From Tubulanus polymorphus (lineage: Eukaryota > Animalia > Nemertea): a stretch of DNA of 64,000 bases. The stretch lies in the NCBI RefSeq assembly GCF_964204645.1, contig NC_134032.1, forward strand, positions 15,674,275 through 15,738,274, in the 5' to 3' direction. Both the position numbers and the translations under genes were made by a program. Of this stretch, positions 22,201 through 48,600 are shown one piece after another. The first letter of the stretch is position 1, and each line of letters opens with the position of its first letter. The notes under the pieces are model-generated. The model was not told where the DNA came from, did no database searches, and worked only from the letters and a program-made list of their open reading frames with translations.

Positions 22201-22703
22201 CGCAGATGATCCGACGATTAGCTTAAAAACGAAACGAAATGTAACCAGAAAAAAGGTTTGAACTATCGAGTGAAAATATATATTCGATTATCAAAATCCA
22301 TGATCTAAGACATTCTGCGCATGATTGTACAACCAGGATGGCCGAGTGGTTAAGGCGTTGGACTTAAGTTCCAATGGACGAATGTCCGCGTGGGTTCGAA
22401 CCCCACTCCTGGTAGATATTTTAACTGTGTCCCTAATGTAAAAATCATTTTACCTTCTTTTGTAACGGAAACTTGTGAGGTCGGTCTCGAATATAACAAA
22501 TCGGTCCTCGATTTTTGGACTTGTGATTTTGGCTTGGCTCCAACAACTGCAGCAGTTGTGTGGCCCGAAACCGCGTCGGCATCTGTGGTCACAATAGCCG
22601 GTATAGCGGGAGAAAACCGGGTCGGACTTCGGCCGTTACGAAAATCCACGAAGTTGCTCATCATGAATATATCCCTGTTCGAAGAGGCGCTTGATTTTGA
22701 CAT
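16258..22703 (-). CDS. SLC35F3: SLC35F3/SLC35F4-like solute carrier (putative thiamine transporter, DMT superfamily), 474 aa, 8 exons
   Basis: Exons 22454-22703, 20786-21071, 19071-19296, 18191-18319, 17977-18043, 17208-17333, 16902-16991, 16258-16508; all GT-AG and in phase (1425 nt). Multi-TM protein with APFFIVYF, LWFVSNYLFIRAL, SFVYLLSWIIL, IVAVIFSISGVVLMAY, KVLFKRLMG, IGLLLAIPFSA motifs. F3 versus F4 orthology cannot be resolved. Confidence 0.9.
17544..17666. mobile_element. PIF/Harbinger-like MITE with CAG target duplication
   Basis: Ends GGCCCAGTT / AACTGGCCC, internally palindromic, CAG on both sides. Confidence 0.7.
17726..17884. mobile_element. PIF/Harbinger-like MITE with CAG target duplication
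   Basis: Ends GGCCCAGTAGCAC / GTGCAACTGGGCT, CAG on both sides. Relatives at ~29853-29978, ~32074-32203, ~34198-34315, ~36340-36467. Confidence 0.7.
18785..18925. repeat. G-rich 21-bp minisatellite (AACTGAGGGGGCAGGGGGTG-like)
   Basis: About 6 copies in SLC35F intron 3. Confidence 0.9.
20436..20792. repeat. (GGACT/AGACT)n degenerate microsatellite
   Basis: ACTGG/ACTAG/ACTAT pentamers running up to the SLC35F exon 2 donor. Confidence 0.9.
22332..22414 (+). tRNA. trnL-TAA: tRNA-Leu (anticodon TAA)
   Basis: 83-nt cloverleaf: acceptor ACCAGGA/TCCTGGT, A-box TGGCCGAGTGG, anticodon arm TTGGA-CTTAAGT-TCCAA, long variable arm, T-loop GTTCGAAC, TTTT terminator downstream. Confidence 0.97.
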
Positions 22704-23835: not shown

Positions 23836-23918
23836 ACCAGGATGGCCGAGTGGTTAAGGCGTTGGACTTAAGTTCCAATGGACGAATGTCCGCGTGGGTT
23901 CGAACCCCACTCCTGGTA
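23836..23918 (+). tRNA. trnL-TAA: tRNA-Leu (anticodon TAA), identical second copy
   Basis: Same sequence as 22332-22414, followed by a TTTT terminator. Confidence 0.97.
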
Positions 23919-31055: not shown

Positions 31056-31557
31056 GACAGAGTTTAAACTCTCGCTGCTCCTAGTGACAGGGTTTAAACT
31101 CGCTGCTCCAACTGACAGGATTTAAACTCGCTGCTCCTAGTGACAAGGTTTAAACTCTCTGCTCCTACTGACAGGATTTAAACTCGCTGCTCCAACTGAC
31201 AGGGTTTAAACTCACTGCTCCTAGTGACAGGGTTTAAACTCGCTGCTCCAACTGACAGGGTTTAAACTCGCTGCTCCAACTGACAGGGTTTAAACTCGCT
31301 GCTCCTAGTGAAAGGGTTTAAACTCGCTGCTCCTAGTGAAAGGGTTTAAACTCGCTGCTCCTAGTGACAGGGTTTAAACTCGCTGCTCCAACTGACAGGG
31401 TTTAAACTCGCTGCTCCTAGTGAAAGGGTTTAAACTCACTGCTCCTAGTGAAAGGGTTTAAACTCGCTGCTCCTAGTGAAAGGGTGTAAACTCGCTGCTC
31501 CTAGTGAAAGGGTTTAAACTCGCTGCTCCTAGCGAAAGGGTTTAAACTCACTGCTCC
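31056..31557. repeat. 28-bp minisatellite (GACAGGGTTTAAACTCGCTGCTCCTAGT)
   Basis: About 18 copies immediately upstream of the PITP start codon. Confidence 0.95.
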
Positions 31558-32552: not shown

Positions 32553-33090
32553 TCACCCAGTCCTGTTTGTCTCCACCAGTGAACTCCGTCACTCTACGAT
32601 CTTAGTTAACTCAACTGTGGTACATCAGACACTGAGGTTCTTGGTGAACCCCTTTAGTTCACCCAGTCCTAGAAGTGGTTGCATCTACAGTGATCTCCGT
32701 CACTCTACGGTCCTAGTGAACCCAACTGTGGTACATCAGACACTAAGGTTCTTGATGAACCCCTTCAGTTCACTCAGTCCTGGAAGTGTTTGTCTCCACA
32801 GTGATCTCCGTCACTCTACGATCCTAGTGAACCCAACCGTGGTACATCAGACACTAAGGTTCTTGATGAACCCCTTCAGTTCACCCAGTCCTGGAAGTGT
32901 TTGTCTCCACACTGATCTCCGTCACTCTACGATCCTAGTGAACCCAACCGTGGTATATCAGACGCTAAGGTTCTTCATGAACCCCTTCAGTTCACACAGT
33001 CCTGGAAGTGTTTGTCTCCACACTGATCTCCGTCAATCTACGGTCCTAGTGAACCCAACTCTGGTATATCAGACACTAAGGTTCTTGGTG
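32553..33090. repeat. 111-bp tandem repeat
   Basis: About 5 copies; 37-aa periodicity in ORF 32461-33126. Confidence 0.92.
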
Positions 33091-34439
33091 ATGTTACGGG
33101 AAGGTACAGTTCCTCCGATCCCGTAGGTCCTTTCCAACAGGTCGTCGCTATTATCCTAATTACAGTCAATTGCCGATATACTGCCCTCTCATATACCGCC
33201 ACCCTCGCCTACCACCAGGTTTTCTCAATGTACATCTCTATACAAATACATAGTAAAACATCCCCGCTATACCGCCATACTCTCTGTACCACAAAAAAAT
33301 CGTTCTGCAGCGATGTGGGCGATATATCTGTATCTAATATTTACCCGAATCATTTAAAAAACAAATGAAGTGAAACAAATTTCGAAAGAGTCATTTAACA
33401 ATTTTATTTTGTTATTTTACCGTTAGTAATATTATTATTATCGTTATTATGATAAAAAGTGAACACATACAAGAACAAACGGATGTATTATACTTTAATA
33501 GAACGCGCGAACACGAGAGAGATCGGAAACAATTTCATTTGCATAATTATATATTCACCAACCAATGGGAAGAGAGATAGAGAGTGAGAACATACAGAAT
33601 GTGTGACGACTTATGTGAGAAAATCGATAAATGTATATATTCAAATAGCGGAAGAATTCGAGGAAATTTGATTACATTATAATATGCAAAACAGCCGTGT
33701 GTCAATATTAACCAATCGGATGTATGTGTGTTTTAATTTATGTTGATATATGCAAAATTATTTTTTAGATGACCAACCGCGCCTGAATCATAGCGAAGTA
33801 TTTTTAGATGGCCTTAAAATGGTCTTAACTCGAATTGGAATCTTGATACAACAATCAGACAAAGTGACCATTCGAAAATATCCTTCCCTCAACACGGGCT
33901 TAAAATACAGATAATAAGATCTTTGAAGACTCGATTTTTTAACAACTTTGAAATGCGTCAAACGGCATGCGCGAATAATTACATCTTGACAATTCTTGTT
34001 TCCATAATAAATAGAAAGGAATTCACGAATGGTAAAGTTAACATACAAATCAACATAAACCCAAGCTGCCGTGTTGCCCAGCCATAGCCCAAATGTTAGA
34101 AAAGTCTAAGGTCGAAAACAAATCTAACAACTTAACACCAGTTTCCAGAGATCTAAGACCACTTTTGGACTTAAGTCTCGACTTTGGAACCGGCTTAGGG
34201 CCCAGTTGCATAGCGATGACTTGAGTCCAAAGGTGGTCTTAAATCTTAGAAAACTAGTGCTAGATTCGCTGAATTACTTAAGTTGGTATTGAATCTAAAC
34301 CACGACTGTGCAACGAGACACAACAGCTGTTTCTATTACTTAATTCATATGACGTCACATAGGATGATATGCCTTCGGGTCGATGCCGTCGGGTTCGAGT
34401 CCCTAAAATATATCAATTGGTGACAATATGATTTTTTTA

Positions 34440-36058: not shown

Positions 36059-36580
36059 TGTATATATTCGAACCTGATTCATTTCCAAGATTCACCCCCG
36101 AGCACATTCATGCATGCAATAAACAAGTTGAGGTCACACTTCCCATTTCACGGGGGGGGGGGGGATGTCAACATAAGATAAATCGAATAAATAAAATCCT
36201 ACAATAGGAACGAGTATGATATGTTTCCTTTGGATAGTATCCTGAAGATGACTATTTCCAATACAGTAAAAACACTAATATAGTCATCTCCAGTATTACT
36301 GAAATTATAACTAATTCATGAAAAGTGTATAAAATCCTGGGCCAGCAGTTGCTCAAAATTTGGTTAGAGTTAACCAGTTGATAATGAGTTGACATAGTGA
36401 CAGTTTAAAGTCCGTTGTTACTGTGATATCCGCCAGTTTCCTTTAACTAAATTTTCAGCAACTGGCTCCACAACAAAAATACAAAAATTAATACGTAAAC
36501 ATTTTATTACTTGATTAGTCTTTTTGTTCCGGGCTGTGCAAATATGTCTCAGACTTATTATCAGCTATTTTAAAGATTGT

Positions 36581-37613
36581 CTGAAGATGACTATCAGGAT
36601 AAAGTCGAAACGTTGAATAAACTACACTAGCTCAAGGAATACAGTATTTCTGAAGATGACTATTAGGATATAGTCGAAACGTTGAATAAACTACACTAGC
36701 TCAAGGAATACAGTATTCCCGAAGATGACTATTAGGATATAGTCGAAACGTTGAATAAACTACACTAGCTCAAGGAATACAGTATTCCTGAAGATGACTA
36801 TTAGGATAAAGTCGAAACATTTAATAAACTACACTAGCTCAGGGAATACAGTATTCCCGAAGATGACTATTTATAGGATATAGTCGAAACGTTAAATAAA
36901 CTACACTAGCTCAAGGAATACAGTATTCCTGAAGATGACTATTAGGATATAGTCGAAACGTTGAATAAACTACACTAGCTCAAAGAATACAGTATTCCTG
37001 AAGATGACTATTAGGAAAAAGTCGAAACGTTGAATAAACTACACTAGCTCAAGGAATACAGTATTCCTGAAGATGACTATCAGGATATAGTCGAAACGTT
37101 GAATAAACTACACTAGCTCAAAGAATACAGTATTCCTGAAATGACTATTAGGATTAAGTCGAAACGTTGAATAAACTACACTAGCTCAAGGAATACAGTA
37201 TTTCTGAAGATGACTATTAGGATAAAGTCGAAACGTTGAATAAACTACACTAGCTCAAAGAATACAGTATTCCTGAAATGACTATTAGGATTAAGTCGAA
37301 ACGTTGAATAAACTACACTAGCTCAAGGAATACAGTATTCCCGAAGATGACTATTAGGATATAGTCGAAACGTTGAATAAACTACACTAGCTCAAGGAAT
37401 ACAGTATTCCTGAAGATGACTATTAGGATATAGTCAAAACGTTGAATAAACTACACTAGCTCAAGGAATACAGTATTTCCGAAGATGACTATTAGGATAT
37501 AGTCAAAACGTTGAATAAACTACACTAGCTCAAGGAATACAGTATTCCTGAAGATGACTATTAGGATTAAGTCGAAACGTTGAATAAACTACACTAGCTC
37601 AAGGAAACATTTC
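36581..37613 (+). ncRNA. Tandem array of ~15 x 69-bp units, each a minimal type I hammerhead-ribozyme motif
   Basis: Unit TATTC-CTGAAGA-T-GACTA-TTAGGATA-TAGTC-GAAA-CG-TT-GAATA-AACTACACTAGCTCAAGGAATACAG: helix I TATTC/GAATA, core CUGANGA and GAAA, helix II GACT(A)/(T)AGTC, palindromic ACGT helix III. The repeat is certain; activity is inferred. Confidence 0.75.
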
Positions 37614-39166
37614 TTTTCTTTCCAATTGTGGGATTCTATGTTACCTTTACAACGGGGCGCACAATGTTTCATCAATGGTTATTAAGTTGCAATCTTGCAG
37701 CCATTTTTGTCACGTGACGTGACGCCATATTGGATGCCGTACTAGTGATGATAAGTACGACTAGTTTCTATATCCCCATTTCCCAATTCAAACGGATCAC
37801 ATGACTATCGATTTAATGGATCATTCAATATTCAAATCGCACAACAGTCGCAACCGTTCTTAATTCAACCTTTACAACGGAAAGTGGTAAACCCCCCTTT
37901 TCACACTCAGTCACAATTATTTACTCTAAAATTCCTAAAAAGTAACGACCACCAAGATTTATTTATCAATAAAAAACACATTTCTTTCGAGATTATTTAG
38001 GGTAGACAGAGTATTTGAACACTTATTGATAAAAAATTCTTTAAAAAGCCTTCGACATCCGGCATCAGAGTCGGCAATTCCAAATCTTTTCTAATACGGT
38101 CGGGTGTTATTAACAAATTTTGGACCATGACAAATTTGACGGTAACATCACCATAAACTCCTAAATCTAATAGGTTTAAATGGATCATCGATTTCGTGGA
38201 TATACGATCGAGTGTGAATGGGGTACCGGCACTCACCAGATGGCGCAACGATTCATTTCCGTAGTGAAAATGAGTTCATATTCAATGCGATTTGAACTTG
38301 ATTTGAAGGCTTCTAATACCGAGTCACAAATATACATAAGATTTGCTTCTCATTATCAGTTTATGCTCAATAGACAGCACTGAAAATTGATTGACTTATC
38401 GGAAAAGTCGATTCGAATTTAGATGAAATGAAAAATGTAGGAGAAATTGATGTGCGGTAACCTGTGCCACTAACGACACCTGGGGAATCATCGCGGAAAC
38501 CTCGCTTGCCACAGTAACGGTGCCGTTACCCCCATTCAGATCGATTCGTCGTTTTCTTCAAAGTTCACGATACGATCATAATTACGAAAAGATTTAACCA
38601 TATTTCAAAACCTACATATATTGATTAATTGTGATTAAGTTTAGTAACTTTGTGCAGATTTTAAATCGAATTTCAATGATTTTTAAATCGGCCGCCATTT
38701 ATTAAACAGCCAAACGATGAGCCTAATTATCATATTTAAATGAGCTCTTAATGAATCTAACACTATATGCTAATTGGATAAAATTTTTATAGGGGGAATA
38801 ACCGGACCATTTTCGCATCGACGTTTTAAAATGTTCATTATAAAGCTAGATTGTTAATACCTCACGCGTTAGAGACAGCTAGGAGGAACTCGAAAGTAAC
38901 AAGGTCAAGGTCAAGGTCACGACGAGACAGACGGACGAACCGGAATCCCTTGCGCGCGCGCATGCGCGTTGCACTAATCTCGAGAAATCTCGCGCCGCTG
39001 GATACTAAAACAAACACCGATTTGATGTTCATTTAACCATAATGCATCTCTTCACTCTTCCAGCAACCATTAAAGAACCAAGGCTAACATAAGAAAAAAT
39101 GCCAGCATTCATAGCTGGTCACGCACACATCAAATCAAGTCTATTATTTTAGTATATATGACAATA

Positions 39167-39606: not shown

Positions 39607-42600
39607 CTACTTGCCGGTCATCATTCGAACGAATTCTAGAAGAAAAAAAAGAAATAAACTCATTATTTATTACGCGCACAGATTCTAAAAAAAGAAATAA
39701 CGATTATGATAAAGGATTGGACAAATACAATTAAAAGTTCGTCAAATGATCAGAAATGAACTTATCATTAGAAGTTTGATATGAAGTTTGTTTAAAGAGT
39801 ATTTTGGCTTTAAACTCTGTTCTAGAGAGGAGGACGTTACATCGACGGCGGTAATGAAAGAATTGAATGGAGGTTTCTATGTTTTGTGTTAAAGATTTGC
39901 TGTCATGGTAACCAAGGGTTTTAGAAGATCGAAAACAGCCTCAAGCATAAACAAAACATGGGCCATAAAACATACTGTATAATACATACTAATGTCTGTT
40001 TCAAATTGACTTGAGAGTACCTCAGTTGGCCTAGCTCAGTCAGTTTTGGTAGTACATACCTGATAAAAGTCTTATCAGGACCAGAAAGCATTGGCAGTTG
40101 ATCAAAAACATTGATTTTTGATCCGTTTGAAACTGTATTGAAGGATATCCAAAAAGTCTTCCCTGAAAGGGGTTAAATGAAGAGAAGTGACTCCATGATT
40201 TGAAAGTTTAAAAATATGTTTCCATTTCTACACACCAAACATCGGTTGGTAGGCATGGAAACATATTGTTAAACTTTCAAATCATGGAGTTACTTTTCTT
40301 TATTTAACTTCTTTCAGTGAAGACTTTTTAGAAATCCTTCAATACAGTTTAAAACGGATTAAAAATCAATAGTTAAGGTCAACTGCTAGTGTTTTCTGGT
40401 CCTCATGAGACTTCTATCAGGTATGTACCATCAAAACTGACCGAGCTAGGCCAACTGAGGTGCTTTCAAGTCAGGTTGAAATTTGTCTCCCCAACCGCAG
40501 CTGTGATAGGAGGGGGTTCACTGAGAACCTATTGCGACTGTTCTACTCTCGCTACAGCTGTGAGGGGGAGGGTTCACTGAGAACCTATTGCGATTGTTTT
40601 ACTCACTGCTCTCCCGCTACAGCTGTGAGGGGAGGGGGTTCATCGAGAACCTATTGCGTCTGTTCTACTCCCGCTACAGCTGTGAGGGGAGAGGGTTCAT
40701 CGAGAATTTATTGCGACTGTTCTACTCGCAGCTCTCCCACTACAGCTGTGAGGGGAGGGGGTTCATCGAGAACCTATTGTGACTGTTCTACTCGCTGCTC
40801 TCCCACTATAGCTGTGATAGGAGAGGTTCACCGTGAGCCTATATCGCGTCAGTTCTAGTCACTAGAGATCGATATAATGTTCGAATCAGCTACAATCAAT
40901 CATCGTCTCTCGTTTCAATCAAAAATAGAAAGTAACGACCGCTTAAAGAACAGACGAATTCAGCTTCTATTTCCGTAATAAACAACGTGCACACTCAGTA
41001 TTATTACTGTAGGCACTCGGGTATAGCGTTAATGAGGCGTTTATGTGAAAATTCAATGCAAATGGTCCCGATATAACGATATATCAATAGCAGTTTTATA
41101 GTCACACAAAAATTATATCGTTTTTTTCTGAATGAATCATAACGTGTTAGAAATATTGAGAGAGTTAACATCACAAGAGTCTGTGTTATAGAAACTGGAA
41201 TTACTAGAGAAAGTGTGCAACTGGGTCCAGAAACTAATTGAACCCACACAACTGTGCAACTGGGTCCAGAAACTAATTGAACCCACACAAGTGTGGAACT
41301 GGGTCCAGAAACTAATTGAACCCACACAACTGTGGAACTGGGTCCAGAAACTAATTGAACCCACACAACTGTGGAACTGGGTCCAGAATCTAATTGAACC
41401 CACACAACTGTGGAACTGGGTCCAGACACTAATTGACCCAACACAACTGTGGAACTGGATCCAGAAACTAATTGAACCCACACAACTGTGAGCTGGGTCC
41501 AGAATCTAATTGAACCCACACAACTGTGGAACTGGGTCCAGACACTAATTGACCCAACACAACTGTGGAACTGGATCCTGAGTCAAACTTAACCCACACA
41601 ACTGTGGAACTGGGTCCAGAAACTAATTGAACCCACACAACTGTGGAACTGAATCCTTAGTCAAAATCAACCGACGCAACTGTGTAACTGGGTCGAGAGA
41701 CAAATTAAACACACACAATTGTGGAACTGGATTCAGAGTCAAATTATACCCACACAACTGTGGAACTGTATCAATTATAAACTCACCTTCATAGTTAACC
41801 TGTCCGTCTCCATCAATATCAGCCGCTCTAATCATTTCATCCAACTCATCATCAGTCAGGTTTTCCCCTAATGACGTCATCAGATGACGTAACTCAGCGG
41901 CGCTGATGTAACCATTTCCGTCCTTATCGAACAACCTGTTTATGATCGAGATCACGAGATTACTATAAAAACAGTCGCCTTCTTATTCCATATGTTTCTA
42001 GTAACGTCCACTATAGACGCATTTGGTAAGGATAAGGATAGGGTTATATAGTGGAATTTGGGAAGCAAAACATTTGTCATATTTGAAATAAAAATTGCCC
42101 TTGAAAATTCCTTCAATTCCTAGCAATCCGGGGTCTGACTTTAAAACTGAAGTTATTAGCAGAGAATGTCTTGATAGAGCGGTTATTGTTACTCCACACC
42201 TCTGACTGAACACCTTCTATAAGTGCCAAACAAACTGCGCCAATCACAACTGGTCTATAGTCTAGTGGTGAGCGTAGCTGTTAGGCGCCCCACACAGGTT
42301 CGAAGTCAACTTTTTACCGAATAATTAAGTCACTTTTTTCGACATCAATTTGGATCCTTAAACGCATTACATGATACGATAATCATTTTGTATTTGTTGT
42401 GATTCGGTGAATAGATTATCTACACATGAGAGTAAGATAAAGCGCGCATTGTTAGTTATAACGGGTTAGTCACCACGCCGACCAGACGAACGTAGAAACT
42501 ACGCACAACTAGAGCGGGGGAACTAGGGTTAGGGTTACGAGCGAGCTAGGGGATATTCGTGGGTCGATCGTAGCGATCGGCGGTAGAACTAATTCCAACC

Positions 42601-45600
42601 ACGAGACGCAACTGGTCCCGATCCCATCTTCAGGCTTTTCTAGACTTAACACCAACCAGTCTAAGCCTCGACTGGGCCAGAACTTTGAAACTATAGGTTT
42701 CTTAAGGCATTATATCGAATATTAACGGTCTAACCTCATTATTTGAAAACATTATTTCCTCTAAATGAATATAGACTGATTTGTGTAGCCTTTTAAACAC
42801 ATACTTCACGTCTGATATATAATGCATGAAGTGGACTCTTGTGTATAACTCGAATTCATATAGGTTTAATTGAGAGAGAATGCACATGTCATTATTACCT
42901 GCTACAGTGTAGAATTAGAATCGCTTCCATAATAATATCGGTAATCATAGTTAATGTGTATATCATATAGCGGTAATACGATTGATACAGAAATAGAGTT
43001 TGAGAAATACTGCAGAATTTGGGCAGCTCAACTTCTATCCCGAGTTGGTACCAAATATTGAGTAAAAATTTGCGTAATACGTTTTTCCAATTGAATGTGT
43101 ATTGTTTGTAATTTAATTTTTAATCTTCTTTCCTCCTGTAGTTTGGATTTTTATTTTTTGGCGAAATAAAGACATATTGTTATTATTCTATCATCAAGAT
43201 GCTATCGTGGAGTTGGTCAAAAGAGTTTGTGAAATACAGTAGACTCTGTCTCTTACTGCGGTTAAGTTGAGACTAGTAAAATTCTACCCCGAGTTGGTGT
43301 CAAATGCTGAGTAAGAGTTTGTGAAATACAGTAGACTCTGTCTCTTACTGCGGTAAAGTTGAGACCGGTAAAATTCTACCCCGAGTAGGTGTTAAATGCC
43401 GAGTAAGAGTTTGTGAAATACAGTAGACTCTGTCTCTTACTGCGGTAAAGTTGAGACCGGTAAAATTCTACCCCGAGTTGGTGTCAAATATTGAGTAAGA
43501 GTTTGTGAAATACAGTAGACTCTGTCTCTTACTGCGGTAAAGTTGAAACCGGTAAAATTCTACCCCGAGTTGGTGTCAAATACTGAGTAAGATTTTGTGA
43601 AATACAGTAGACTCTGTCTCTTACTGCGGTAAAGTTGAAACCGGTAAAATTCTACCCCGAGTTGGTGTCAAATACTGAGTAAGAGTTTGTGAAATACAGT
43701 AGACTCTGTTTCTTACTGCGGTAAAGTTAAGACCGGTAAAATTCTACCCCGAGTTGGTGTCAAATACTGAGTAAGAGTTTGTGAAATACAGTAGACTCTG
43801 TCTCTTACTGCGGTAAAGTTAAGACCGGTAAAATTCTACCTCGAGTAGGTGTTAAATACTGAGTAAGAGTTTGTGAAATACAGTAGACTATGTCTCTTAC
43901 TGCGGTAAAGTTGAGACCGGTAAAATTCTACCTCGAGTAGGTGTTAAATACTGAGTAAGAGTTTGTGAAATACAGTAGACTATGTCTCTTACTGCGGTAA
44001 AGTTGAGACCGGTAAAATTCTACCCCGAGTTGGTGTCAAATATTGAGTAAGAGTTTGTGAAATACAGTAGACTCTGTCTCTTACTGCGGTAAAGTTGAGA
44101 CCGGTAAAATTCGGACCCCAAACAGGTGCACTCGGTTAGACCCCAATCGGGATGAACTAACCTGAAAGCTTCCTTTATCTCTTCCTCTCGGTTGCATTCT
44201 TTCTCTTTCCGTACCATCATTTTGAGGAATTCGTCGAAGTCAATTGTGCCGCTATCTAAAAGTACAAACAAAGTCAACGATCCTAGGATTAATGAAACTC
44301 GAATCCACGGCGTCAACCAGATCAATTTTATCAATGTTATAAGTTTATTTCGGGCGCCGCGCGAGGTTTTCGACGCTTTATCGTTAACCCGTTCAGATTC
44401 GTCCCGAAAGATATCATTCACCGTCCGGTGGCTCCCCCTAAGATCGTTAATATATCCAGATTGATTTTGAATCAGTCGCCGCTGCCGAGGTTTTATCGAA
44501 GACATATTATCATCCGGTTTGAAGCGCGCGCTGATTTTCACAAAAGTCTCAAAACGCTAATTTATTATCGGCGGTTCTTAATACGCAGTTTTCATCGCAC
44601 GCACTTCCGTATCCGGTATAGAATAAATCTCGCGAGACTTCGCGTTATTCCCGCGCCATTGCGGTGATCACGGGATTTGGTGGTTTAGTGGAGGGTGATT
44701 ATAACAGCCGTCCGGACCGAGCAGACGACCGTGATGCTCAGTGCGCCTGTGCTGATGGTTACTACACTGTAACACTGTATTCCCCTCCGCGATTTGCTGC
44801 GAGTTTTCATTCGGCCTTCACACCGCGTATCGCATCATCACGTGATACGTTAACGCAATAGATCGCTAGCTTTTTCTCTTTTTTCAAATGATCAATGATT
44901 AAAGCCGTTATTTTTCAAATTTATTTGTATTTATGAAATAGTGCCGTATTTTATACAATATGTCTGTACTTTTTTCTCTGAAGACAAATACAGCTTAAAC
45001 CAAACAATACAGATTGAGGCTCAAAAATAGAGATGACTTCAGTAATGTGACAACTTATCCAAATGATGACTTACACTTAGTAAATTGAATTAGAAATATA
45101 AATTTAGACTCAAAAATAGATATGACTTCAGTAATGTGACGACTTTATCCAAATGATGACTTACACTTAGTAAATTGAATTAGAAATACAAATTGAGACT
45201 CAAAAATAGAGATGACTTCAGTAATGTGACGACTTTATCCAAATGATGACTTACACTTAGTGAATTGGATTAGAAATATAAATTGAGACTCAAAAATAGA
45301 GATGACTTCAGTAATATGACGACTTATCCAAATGATGACTTACACTTAGTGAATTGGATTAGAAATATAAATTGAGACTCAAAAATAGATATGACTTCAG
45401 TAATGTGACGACTTTATCCAAATGATGACTTACATTTTAAATTGAATTAGAAATACAAAATTGGCAGTGGGATGTTGACGCGTTTGAGTACATGCTATGA
45501 TAATCTGTTCATCATTCTCGATAACAATCTGTCAAACAAAATATCATCCGATATAAATTATTCAAATCATGATCACCACCTTCGCGCATGCGTCACTGAG

Positions 45601-48600
45601 CAATTATATCAGTTAGACCCTAGCCTACCGCGCAACACATTTACCAGTATATTCCGTATATAGATCTATAATTCATTGAATTCGCTTTATCCAAATCGGC
45701 CTGGTGGCGATTACCAGAACACGAAATGTCACAATAAATAGCCTATTACATCGTGTTAGTATTTATAATCGATGAAACCATTGATGAAACGTTTTACGTT
45801 CATTTTGTAAAAGATTATACAAAATCCAACGCTGAAAGTAAAAAGTTTCAGAAACGCAGGCGATGTTTCCCTGAGCTTGTACGTAGTTTATTCGACTCAG
45901 ATTAGTGAGTCTTCGGGAATAGTACGATAACCTGTACACTCAAAAGTGGTGAATGGATAATAAGATAAAAGCCCACAATGAACGAATTTAAAAAATTCTA
46001 AACTCGAGAATTTATCTCTAATATGTAAAAAACCACGACGTTTCGATCTCACACTAGATATCATCGTCAGGTGTGAGATATAGACTAAAAGCAGGGGTAT
46101 ATATACAGAGGAGGACAGGTTAATTGAGTAAATTGATGAGTAAGTAAGTAATTAGTGTTTGGCAAGGCCTCCTCCGTATATAAAAACGTGGTGAACGGAT
46201 AATAAGATAAAAATCTACTATGTACAAATTAAAAGAATCAAAATCGGGAATTTATTATTTCAAAAAATCTCTAAAAGATACCGCGACGTTTGGATCTCAA
46301 CCTTGAGATTATCGACAGGTGTGAGATGGTGACTTAAAACGGACGGGAAGAATATGAGGCTATTGTGTAAATTAGCGAGTGAGTAAGTAATTAGTGTTTG
46401 GCAAGGCCTCCTTAGTAAATTATTGACTCATTTAAGAGAACATCGAACGCGGAAATGAGGCCGACTTTCTACTAGCGACACCTGGTGGATCCGAACGCGG
46501 AAATAAGACCGTCTATCTACTAGCGGCACCTGGCGGATCCTCGCCTGCCATACGTGGAATCCTCAATTGCCACACTGCGGGTATCCCATTTACTGATGCG
46601 TCCATGTTTTATCATACCAACCAACGAAAATCGATTACCAAACCTTCTTCCCACTCGAAACAGGCGACGTAACTTAATACAAGAAATTAATTCTCACATC
46701 CCGGAAGAAGAATTAGACTTCGTATACCGGTCACGGGACTCATATACTTATGTCGTATATTGAATGTTTTAGAGACTCATATACGTATGTCGTATATTGA
46801 ATGTCTTATATCCATCGACCGCTGGGTGTTATCACACAGTAAGTGGCGGAACGCTTACAATTGAAATACTCACTGATAACCATATTTACATTGTACTCGT
46901 GTAGTGAAGTTATTTTTGAAGTGTTTGAATTTAAGCGATACCGCCTGTATCTGAACTGTATCCAAACTGTATCCTAACTGTATCTAGATAGTATCTTAAC
47001 TGTATCCATGGAATACAGTATTCCTGAAGATGACTATTAGGATAAAGTCGAAACGTTGAATAAACTACACTAGCTCAAGGAATACAGTATTCCTGAAGAT
47101 GACTATTAGGATAAAGTCGAAACGTTGAATAAACTACACTAGCTCAAGGAATACAGTATTCCTGAAGATGACTATTAGGATATAGTCGAAACGTTGAATA
47201 AACTACATTAGCTCAAGGAATACAGTATTCCTGAAGATGACTATTAGGATAAAGTCGAAACGTTGAATAAACTACACTAGCTCAAGGAATACAGTATTCC
47301 TGAAGATGACTATTAGGATAAAGTCGAAACGTTGAATAAACTACACTAGCTCAAGGAATACAGTATTCCTGAAGATGACTATTAGGATAAAGTCGAAACG
47401 TTGAATAAACTACACTAGCTCAAGGAATACAGTATTCCTGAAGATGACTATTAGGATAAAGTCGAAACGTTGAATAAACTACACTAGCTCAAGGAATACA
47501 GTATTCCTGAAGATGACTATTAGGATTTAGTCGAAACGTTGAATAAACTACACTAGCTCAAGGAATACAGTATTCCTGAAGATGACTATTAGGATTTAGT
47601 CGAAACGTTGAATAAACTACACTAGCTCAAGGAATACAGTATTCCTGAAGATGACTATTAGGATTTAGTCGCAACGTTGAATAAACTACACTAGCTCAAG
47701 GAATACAGTATTCCTGAAGATGACTATTAGGATAAAGTCGAAACGTTGAATAAACTACACTAGCTCAAGGAAACATTTCAGACTCTTTTTATTCTTAGTG
47801 CGCAAGGATTTTCGACATCGTTTTTACAACACGGATTCAGAGAGTGTTTCATCATCGTCATTTCCTTCCCCAAATATCACAGAGATTTAAAAAAAAAACC
47901 AAAACGCATCTTAAAAATCGAAAAGAATTTTCAGTTTTCAGTTGCTCACGATAAATAAATCTTACCATCTTCGTCGACCTCATTTATCATGTCCTGTAAT
48001 TCACCTTCGGTCGGATTCTGACCTAATGACCTCATTACTGTACCCAATTCTTTAGTCGTTATCGATCCGTCGCCATCTTTATCGAACAGCGAGAAAGCTT
48101 CTCTGTATTCTGTGAAATAGAAAAACTGAAATATCAAAATCGAGGGTTCGTTACAACTACACATACGCCATCTGCCGTCGTGTAGGCACATTATGTGTTT
48201 TTATCTTAAAATACGGATTGACCGGGTGATTGACCCCCATTATTCATTTGATTGGTAGATTTCGTTTGATTTATTTTGATTTGGTGTCCCTTTACAAACC
48301 ACACCTGCCGGGAACGAAACAGGGGGTTAGATGTAGAAATCGAAGTACAGATAACGGATGGACGGACACATTGTGTTCATCACTAGGAGACTCAGAAACT
48401 GATGTCGTTCAGTCGTTTCTAAACGAAACAGCATCATTTACAAATTACAATCACTAGTTCTGTACCCTGTTCCACAGTTCAGTTCCACAGTTCAGTTCCA
48501 CAGTTCAGTTCCACAATTCTGTACCCAGTTCCACAGTTCAGTTCCACAATTCTGTACCCTGTTCTTCAGTTCAGTTCCACAGTTCAGTTCCACAATTCTG

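Follow-up and report, generated by a model that had tools for sequence, protein, structure and literature searches.

In the genome of the nemertean Tubulanus polymorphus, a run of short tandem repeats, each of which carries what reads as a complete hammerhead ribozyme (HHR), raises the question of how such a satellite came about. The units could represent a minute self-cleaving replicon that is cut out of its own transcript, a passive repeat spread at the DNA level, or an offshoot of a larger mobile element. Here, the 64,000-nucleotide stretch of DNA containing the repeat (referred to as the window) was analyzed together with related loci across the genome (268 Mb, 77 contigs). The answer that we consider likely is that the arrays are non-autonomous derivatives of Penelope-like elements (PLEs), that is, a non-LTR retrozyme with a minimal HHR that would be mobilized in trans by the PLEs resident in the same genome.

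Hammerhead units in the window

Two arrays of a 69-nt unit are present on the forward strand of the window. Array 1 (36581 to 37606) was delimited by Tandem Repeats Finder with a period of 69, 14.9 copies, 94% matches, and a score of 1808, which together with direct reading of the units bears out the original prediction of a satellite of about 15 head-to-tail hammerhead copies. The span given there (36581 to 37613) was correct at its start but not at its end, where the last seven nucleotides (ACATTTC) belong to a conserved 3′ tail and the repeat itself stops at 37606. The array is 5′-truncated and starts at CUGAAGA, without the 5′ strand of helix I. About 280 nt upstream of it (36236 to 36300, strand unassigned), two degenerate hammerhead 5′ halves (AGTATCCTGAAGATGACTAT ... 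ATAGTCATCTCCAGTATTAC) are arranged in inverted, hairpin-like fashion without a GAAA box, probably as the remnant of an older PLE-type insertion. Array 2 (47010 to 47772) has the same orientation, comprises 11 copies of the 69-nt unit, and opens with GGAATACAG. Its 5′ end is adjoined by about six 11-nt mini-repeats (CTGTATCYNAA, 46945 to 47009) that loosely resemble the ACAGTATTCC stretch of the unit.

The unit is composed, in order, of UAUUC, CUGAAGA, an unpaired U, GACUAU-loop-AUAGUC, GAAA, ACGU, U17, and the helix I 3′ strand GAAUA. Helix I is formed by 5 bp between UAUUC and GAAUA, helix II by 6 bp (GACUAU/AUAGUC) closed by UAGGAU, and helix III by the palindromic, loop-less ACGU, with GUU as the cleavage triplet. 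In some unit variants (AUAAAGUC, AUUAAGUC, and AUUUAGUC) helix II is shortened to 4–5 bp, and one helix II position shows an A/T polymorphism of 52/48% among 318 sampled 69-nt units. A complete example of 45 nt, from the 5′ strand of helix I through its 3′ strand, is found at 36923 to 36967 (forward strand), where the cut is predicted between 36962 (U17) and 36963 (G1.1). The HHR occupies 45 of the 69 nt, and the remaining 24-nt spacer opens by completing AAUAAA (AAUAAAC after GAAUA).

Core mutations, which had been predicted for several copies, turned out to be commoner than stated. When array 1 was read unit by unit, 8 of 15 cores were found to be damaged and 7 intact: U4 is changed to C in four units, one core base is lost in two (CUGAA-AUG), G12 is changed to A in two (GUCAAAAC), one of which also carries U4>C, and one unit combines ACAUUU (G16.2>A) with G1.1>U. 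Units with identical mutations recur as blocks, which indicates that DNA-level duplication continued after the core had been lost. In array 2, 10 of the 11 cores are intact, by which measure it looks younger than array 1. At least two consecutive intact motifs are found in each array (36921 to 37059 in array 1 and units 1–9 in array 2).

A search with the Rfam hammerhead models, one of the checks originally proposed, gave no match to either array at the gathering score or at E ≤ 10. In our reading this blank carries little weight, as the models are expected to need a closed helix III, which is absent in a loop-less motif. The consensus unit contains the core C3-U4-G5-A6-N7-G8-A9 ... G12-A13-A14-A15.1 ... 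U16.1-H17, and both core boxes are kept in 255 of the 318 sampled units. Furthermore, two additional PLE families among the retrieved loci possess a HHR of the same architecture with other helices: one of them pairs GGCUAA with UUAGCC in helix II, the other GGGUGG with CCACCC, and helix I differs as well. Families 1 and 2 have ACGU as helix III and family 3 has AUAU, and the single unpaired nucleotide between A9 and G10.1 is U in families 1 and 2 and A in family 3. In the alignment of these motifs (A1, including window positions 36921 to 36976 and loci L068, L072, L075, and L079) the core columns are invariant across the three PLE hammerhead families and G10.1-C11.1 is a G-C pair in 7 of 7 rows. 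Covariation, which was assessed across these three independent families only, is found at 8 of 11 helix pairs altered on both sides; 90.9% of the alignment cells are paired, compared with 34–44% when the partner strand is slid, and the covariation score was reached by 0 of 500 shuffles.

Could an AT-rich satellite simply happen to hold CUGANGA and GAAA boxes? The silence of the Rfam models would fit such a coincidence. On the other hand, the same motif is located at the 3′ end of PLE copies, where PLE hammerheads have been reported (PMC4209133, PMC8557442), and it shows all four of the extra features by which minimal HHRs were defined by Cervera & de la Pena 2014 (PMC4209133), namely a short helix I with a long helix II, a nucleotide at A9/G10.1, the G10.1-C11.1 pair, and a palindromic 15.2-16.2 without loop 3. 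It is the covariation across three families together with the position of the motif in PLEs that excludes a chance origin, whose probability we regard as negligible. On the strength of its match to the PLE copies and of this covariation, each unit is a minimal type I hammerhead motif of the PLE kind, with palindromic, loop-less helix III, as had been proposed, and its self-cleavage is a prediction.

Two details of the alignment may be added. The first three nucleotides of loop 2 are UAG in each of the PLE hammerhead families, three in number, although its remainder is variable (alignment A1), and this UAG could make a tertiary or protein contact. The AAUAAA that follows the cleavage site was considered as a conserved poly(A) signal and rejected, because it is limited to family 1 and absent from PLE families 2 and 3; its presence is probably incidental.

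Kinship with resident Penelope-like elements

At least 150 GIY-YIG matches were found in the genome, many of them within open frames of 817–841 aa. At locus L080, RVT_1 and GIY-YIG are encoded in one frame, part of an 833-aa open frame whose stop lies 385 nt upstream of the HHR. In eight retrieved PLE loci the same HHR is located ~650 nt past the start of the GIY-YIG match. The array unit is 96–98% identical to the PLE loci over the HHR and 82–85% identical over the first ~95 nt (the HHR and ~50 nt downstream), and the region 3′ of the HHR is alignable for ~95–135 nt among the PLE copies, a longer satellite unit described below, and both window arrays.

Most retrieved arrays run from their last unit into one conserved tail sequence. 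When this tail was used as a query, it was found inside a second satellite with a unit of 167 nt (L058, 1458 to 2187, 4.4 copies, 97%), and about 13 other arrays of this type are present in loci L032–L060 (contig C8 at 0.2–3.7 Mb, C6, and C9). In the 167-nt unit, the HHR and the initial 20 nt of spacer are those of the 69-nt unit and are followed by another 102 nt; the unit covers the PLE sequence that begins at the hammerhead and ends at the 3′ terminus, and adds a linker of 20 nt. Both core boxes are kept in 20 of 41 sampled 167-nt units. The 69-nt unit corresponds to the 167-nt unit with ~98 nt deleted, and every 69-nt array thus closes with one partial long unit. In array 1 this partial unit, homologous to the PLE 3′ end, covers 37607 to 37681 of the forward strand; it ends in ...CATCAATGGTTA and contains a degenerate copy of an AC-rich stem-loop at ~37646–37673. 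The corresponding tail of array 2, also on the forward strand, covers 47773 to 47854, with the stem-loop strands AACAC at 47828–47832 and GTGTT at 47844–47848. Beside the 167-nt hammerhead array in L058, elsewhere on the contig, a 39/78-nt satellite (…AACTGTGGAACTGGRTCCAGA…) was observed at 768–1159, which also occurs in the window (41211 to 41768).

The PLE copies have two alternative 3′ stops, three of them ending at ...GGGATTCTCTCyaCAT and five ~38 nt beyond at ...CTACCAATCGT. The boundaries of 35 arrays (22 of the 69-nt unit and 13 of the 167-nt type, the latter with periods of 156–167 nt) were compared with the 8 PLE ends, and their 3′ ends cluster ~63–75 nt and ~103–110 nt past the cleavage site, as in the PLE copies; a few arrays end elsewhere (37–50 or 81–82 nt past the cleavage site). 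The optional ~40 nt between the two end classes hold AACAC-loop-GUGUU, and the tails of both window arrays belong to the long class. Arrays and autonomous elements thus share both 3′ end classes at the nucleotide level.

The unit is dispersed in the genome. A 28-mer spanning the cleavage site and spacer has 962 exact copies, a 32-mer specific to the 69-nt junction has 956 (479 forward and 477 reverse), and the PLE-type version of the site has 536. The retrieved arrays are distributed over nine contigs in both orientations, are concentrated in a small number of regions at low or high coordinates of the contigs, and are flanked by unique sequence on both sides in more than 30 cases. Since the junction deletion is unlikely to have arisen twice, it was junction-bearing multimers that moved, rather than monomers only. 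The retrozyme-like, mobile nature suspected from the sequence of the one array is supported in this respect, with the junction-bearing unit found at dozens of loci with unique flanks. Carriage by a Helitron or another DNA transposon was weighed and set aside, as the 3′ flank is the PLE end and the 5′ flanks are unique.

Insertion ends, cleavage, and decay

The 5′ ends vary among arrays but concentrate at the beginning of the HHR: 13 of 22 69-nt arrays and 6 of 13 arrays of the 167-nt type start within its first 8 nt (in a preliminary tally of such hammerhead-edge starts, 11/21 and 7/11, the binomial P was ~6e-6 and 2e-7). The predicted cleavage site is the start of 0 of the sampled arrays of either type. 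Genome-wide, starts were counted with patterns demanding four non-matching bases ahead of a given position. A start exactly at G1.1 gave 0 matches for the array type and 2 for the PLE type, compared with 0 at the control offset of +2 (array type) and with 2 and 0 at the control offsets of +4 and −4 (PLE type), so that element starts at the cleavage site are not enriched. A start at the second base of the HHR gave 9 matches under a stricter flank rule. Inserted copies carry no cleavage footprint and end preferentially at the 5′ edge of the ribozyme.

Inverted copies in head-to-head arrangement lie beside several arrays as well as beside sites of the PLE type. Hammerhead sites of this latter type are often paired head to head in inverted orientation, at a distance of 56–130 nt (for example, C1:1110950/1111049 and C2:4776758/4776849), a geometry that places the junction near the 5′ edge of both hammerheads, i.e., at the same preferred end as in the arrays. 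By eye, no convincing target-site duplications were found at the two window arrays or at the retrieved loci, and many 3′ flanks begin with A/T.

These ends bear on the possibility that unequal crossing-over multiplied a PLE terminus and that segmental duplication or recombination spread the arrays, with a passive hammerhead and no retrotransposition. Such a history would explain the blocks of identically mutated units inside array 1, the gathering of arrays in few regions at low or high contig coordinates, and the neutral decay of the copies. Segmental duplication would, however, bring flanking DNA along, against which the unique flanks count; moreover, the 3′ ends coincide at the nucleotide level with the two end positions of PLE copies, the 5′ ends vary among arrays, and the two orientations occur with equal frequency. 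Spread purely at the DNA level is therefore judged very improbable.

The original prediction went further than mobility and had the transcript cut into 69-nt monomers, as an ultra-minimal retrozyme or circRNA replicon. Spelled out, double hammerheads of neighboring units would cut after GUU, and the resulting 69-nt monomers would circularize and serve as rolling-circle templates for reverse transcription, which would yield new arrays. The head-to-tail organization, the high share of units with both core boxes, and the consecutive intact motifs in both window arrays agree with this scheme, which also follows the metazoan retrozyme model of Cervera & de la Pena 2020 (PMC7229834), and weak in vitro cleavage is reported for dimers or trimers of minimal PLE hammerheads (PMC4209133). 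Against it stand the array boundaries: each array is closed by a tail that a 69-nt circle would not contain, and starts at the cut site are no more frequent than at control offsets. In the one PLE that was tested biochemically, mutation of the HHR leaves insertion normal, and the cleavage site is not an end point of RNA-seq reads (PMC11167929).

The pattern of decay argues in the same direction. In 318 in-register 69-nt units from 22 arrays, the variability amounts to 1.3% in the core, 2.7% in the whole HHR, and 0.8% in the spacer, and in 41 units of 167 nt the respective values are 2.4%, 3.5%, and 1.0%; the core is in neither set of genomic units better conserved than the spacer. An excess conservation of core and paired positions, one of the points on which the original prediction had made its case depend, is absent in these genomic copies, a comparison that is blind to selection on source copies. 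As the core is no less variable than the spacer, the copies decay without protection of the core. The HHR part of the 69-nt unit is about three times as variable as the spacer; CpG decay in GTCGAAACGT accounts for only part of this, and two CpGs in the GUCGAAACGU 3′ box account for some of the excess.

Folding predictions likewise do not favor the dimeric ribozyme. Helix II is formed with P = 0.97 in RNAfold, and the double hammerhead reaches −4.5 to −10.7 kcal/mol compared with a minimum free energy (MFE) of −17.5 to −18.5 kcal/mol, a gap of 7–14 kcal/mol in energy models that leave out core tertiary contacts. For the 69-nt dimer the values are −4.5 kcal/mol for the double hammerhead and −18.5 kcal/mol for the MFE fold. 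Here, the deletion junction gives rise to a hairpin of 7 bp (AGGAAUA-CAG-UAUUCCU) in which the helix I strand and C3-U4 are engaged; this palindrome is absent from the 167-nt unit and from the PLE. The hairpin is suggestive of a fold that would compete with the active hammerhead.

In a search of sequencing runs the repeat was found in no run on record as RNA, and X11, the only run guessed to be RNA, holds none. Runs X1 and X2 cover the unique flank evenly at a depth of 15–22 and so behave as DNA runs.

With tails outside the unit, no enrichment of starts at the cut site, cores kept no better than the spacer, and a competing junction hairpin, the step from satellite to 69-nt monomers and circular RNA is not supported, and we regard an active replicon of this size as unlikely. 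Were it true, 69-nt circles would be the smallest known ribozyme-bearing circular RNA retroelement, far under the ~170-nt floor of demonstrated retrozyme RNAs.

A putative route of origin and its place among described systems

An origin from PLEs, which we favor, can be laid out as a sequence of putative steps. The unit would derive from the PLE 3′ region from the hammerhead onward, with the 167-nt form arising first and the 69-nt form by the ~98-nt deletion. A transcript of an array plus its tail may then be copied to new sites by the reverse transcriptase/GIY-YIG endonuclease of a PLE acting in trans. Reverse transcription would begin inside the tail, on either side of the AC-rich stem-loop, and thereby generate the two 3′ ends; it would stop or truncate upstream, preferentially at the first bases of a hammerhead, and thereby generate the 5′ ends. 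After insertion, the arrays may change in length by unequal exchange at the DNA level and subsequently decay neutrally, so that array 1, half of it inactivated, would be the older copy and array 2 the younger.

The two 3′ end classes and the AC-rich stem-loop fit what has been described for PLEs (PMC11167929, PMC8557442). Craig et al. 2021 (PMC8557442) described the PLE 'tail' as an optional extension of 30–40 bp, and Frangieh et al. 2024 (PMC11167929), who tested a Poseidon element of Anolis biochemically, explained it by a start of reverse transcription at two adjacent internal sites, with an AC-rich stem-loop ~110 nt past the HHR. Here, the two 3′ ends are likewise ~40 nt apart around an AC-rich stem-loop, which is located ~85–105 nt downstream of the HHR cleavage site. 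The 5′ truncation, the head-to-head inverted copies, and the non-autonomous derivatives in multiple head-to-tail copies, which have no more than the 3′ end in common with the autonomous element, are further parts of this insertion signature. Unlike the biochemical evidence for the Anolis element (PMC11167929), the signature is deduced in the present case from end positions, and the HHR of the resident PLE family is found in the 3′ UTR and not at the start of the ORF. The clustering of starts at the 5′ edge of the ribozyme and the unprotected cores both argue against cleavage setting the template ends. The hammerhead fold may instead mainly cause the PLE reverse transcriptase to stop or turn around. 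With such a stop, arrays, 167-nt units, and inverted PLE pairs would all begin at its first bases.

The motif itself resembles the minimal HHRs of PLEs (PMC4209133) in its 5-bp helix I, its 6-bp helix II, the one unpaired nucleotide between A9 and G10.1, the G10.1-C11.1 pair, and the palindromic helix III without loop 3, which can consequently form only between two motifs. It is also sited alike, within a terminal repeat or 3′ region, in a PLE that encodes reverse transcriptase and C-terminal GIY-YIG. Minimal PLE HHRs cleave poorly in vitro (PMC4209133). However, the HHRs surveyed in PMC4209133 are mostly single, highly variable copies or pairs ~3 kb apart, whereas here one nearly invariant motif is repeated about 1,000 times at a spacing of 69 or 167 nt.

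With metazoan non-LTR retrozymes, the arrays have in common that short AT-rich units with a type I hammerhead each are dispersed in tandem, are non-autonomous, and are related to PLE terminal repeats. In Cervera & de la Pena 2020 (PMC7229834), retrozymes are described with units of ~170–400 nt, canonical HHRs with loop-loop contacts, and demonstrated linear and circular RNA. The 167-nt parent unit lies at the lower edge of that size range, while the 69-nt unit, which is known from DNA alone, differs in its length and in its minimal HHR without loop 1. That retrozyme monomers are usually longer than 69 nt, as originally stated, holds for the 2020 units but is weakened by a recent preprint (Li, Clavereau & Pollet 2026, 10.64898/2026.07.22.740005), which accepts minimal HHRs and reports retrozyme families of 51–972 bp; in view of these, the length of 69 nt alone is not new. 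The operational definition given there, a tandem repeat with two or more complete HHRs in succession, be they canonical or minimal, applies to both window arrays. Classical hammerhead satellites (newt satellite 2, Schistosoma Sm-alpha, and cave-cricket pDo500; PMC4209133 and PMC7229834) are similar in that the satellite unit encodes a type I hammerhead. According to PMC7229834, the weak helix III of amphibian hammerhead repeats favors dimeric cleavage, although these repeats, unlike the 69-nt unit, measure ~330 bp, possess a short but real helix III hairpin, and have documented transcripts.

The only published link between retrozymes and PLEs that we found is that preprint, which proposes, for vertebrates and by co-occurrence and sequence relatedness, that retrozymes are PLE derivatives, a proposal that the present arrays fit. 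A sharing of short and long 3′ ends between arrays and autonomous PLEs is not reported in the accessible portions of PMC7229834 or 10.64898/2026.07.22.740005. To this the window locus adds the nucleotide-level agreement in both end classes, the derivation of the 69-nt from the 167-nt unit, and the starts clustered at the ribozyme 5′ edge; in an invertebrate, satellites of the retrozyme type are thereby tied to PLE-type priming with nucleotide resolution. The genome holds hundreds of PLE-type hammerhead sites, many open PLE ORFs, and 167-nt as well as 69-nt derivatives with the same ribozyme and the same two 3′ ends, and is thus valuable comparative material on the role of hammerheads in Penelope-like elements. 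For annotation, it is recommended that the arrays be labeled as PLE-derived repeats and not as novel ribozyme genes.

Several further satellites make the window a repeat-rich region, including a 28-nt satellite at 31056 to 31557, a 111-nt satellite at 32564 to 33091, and a 92-nt satellite at 43221 to 44112. A full-length U2 snRNA gene on the reverse strand at 63722 to 63914 (187 bits) and two tRNA genes of 83 nt mark the window as eukaryotic. The tRNA genes, with a long variable arm, are encoded on the forward strand at 22332 to 22414 and 23836 to 23918; they are identical to each other and 1.5 kb apart.
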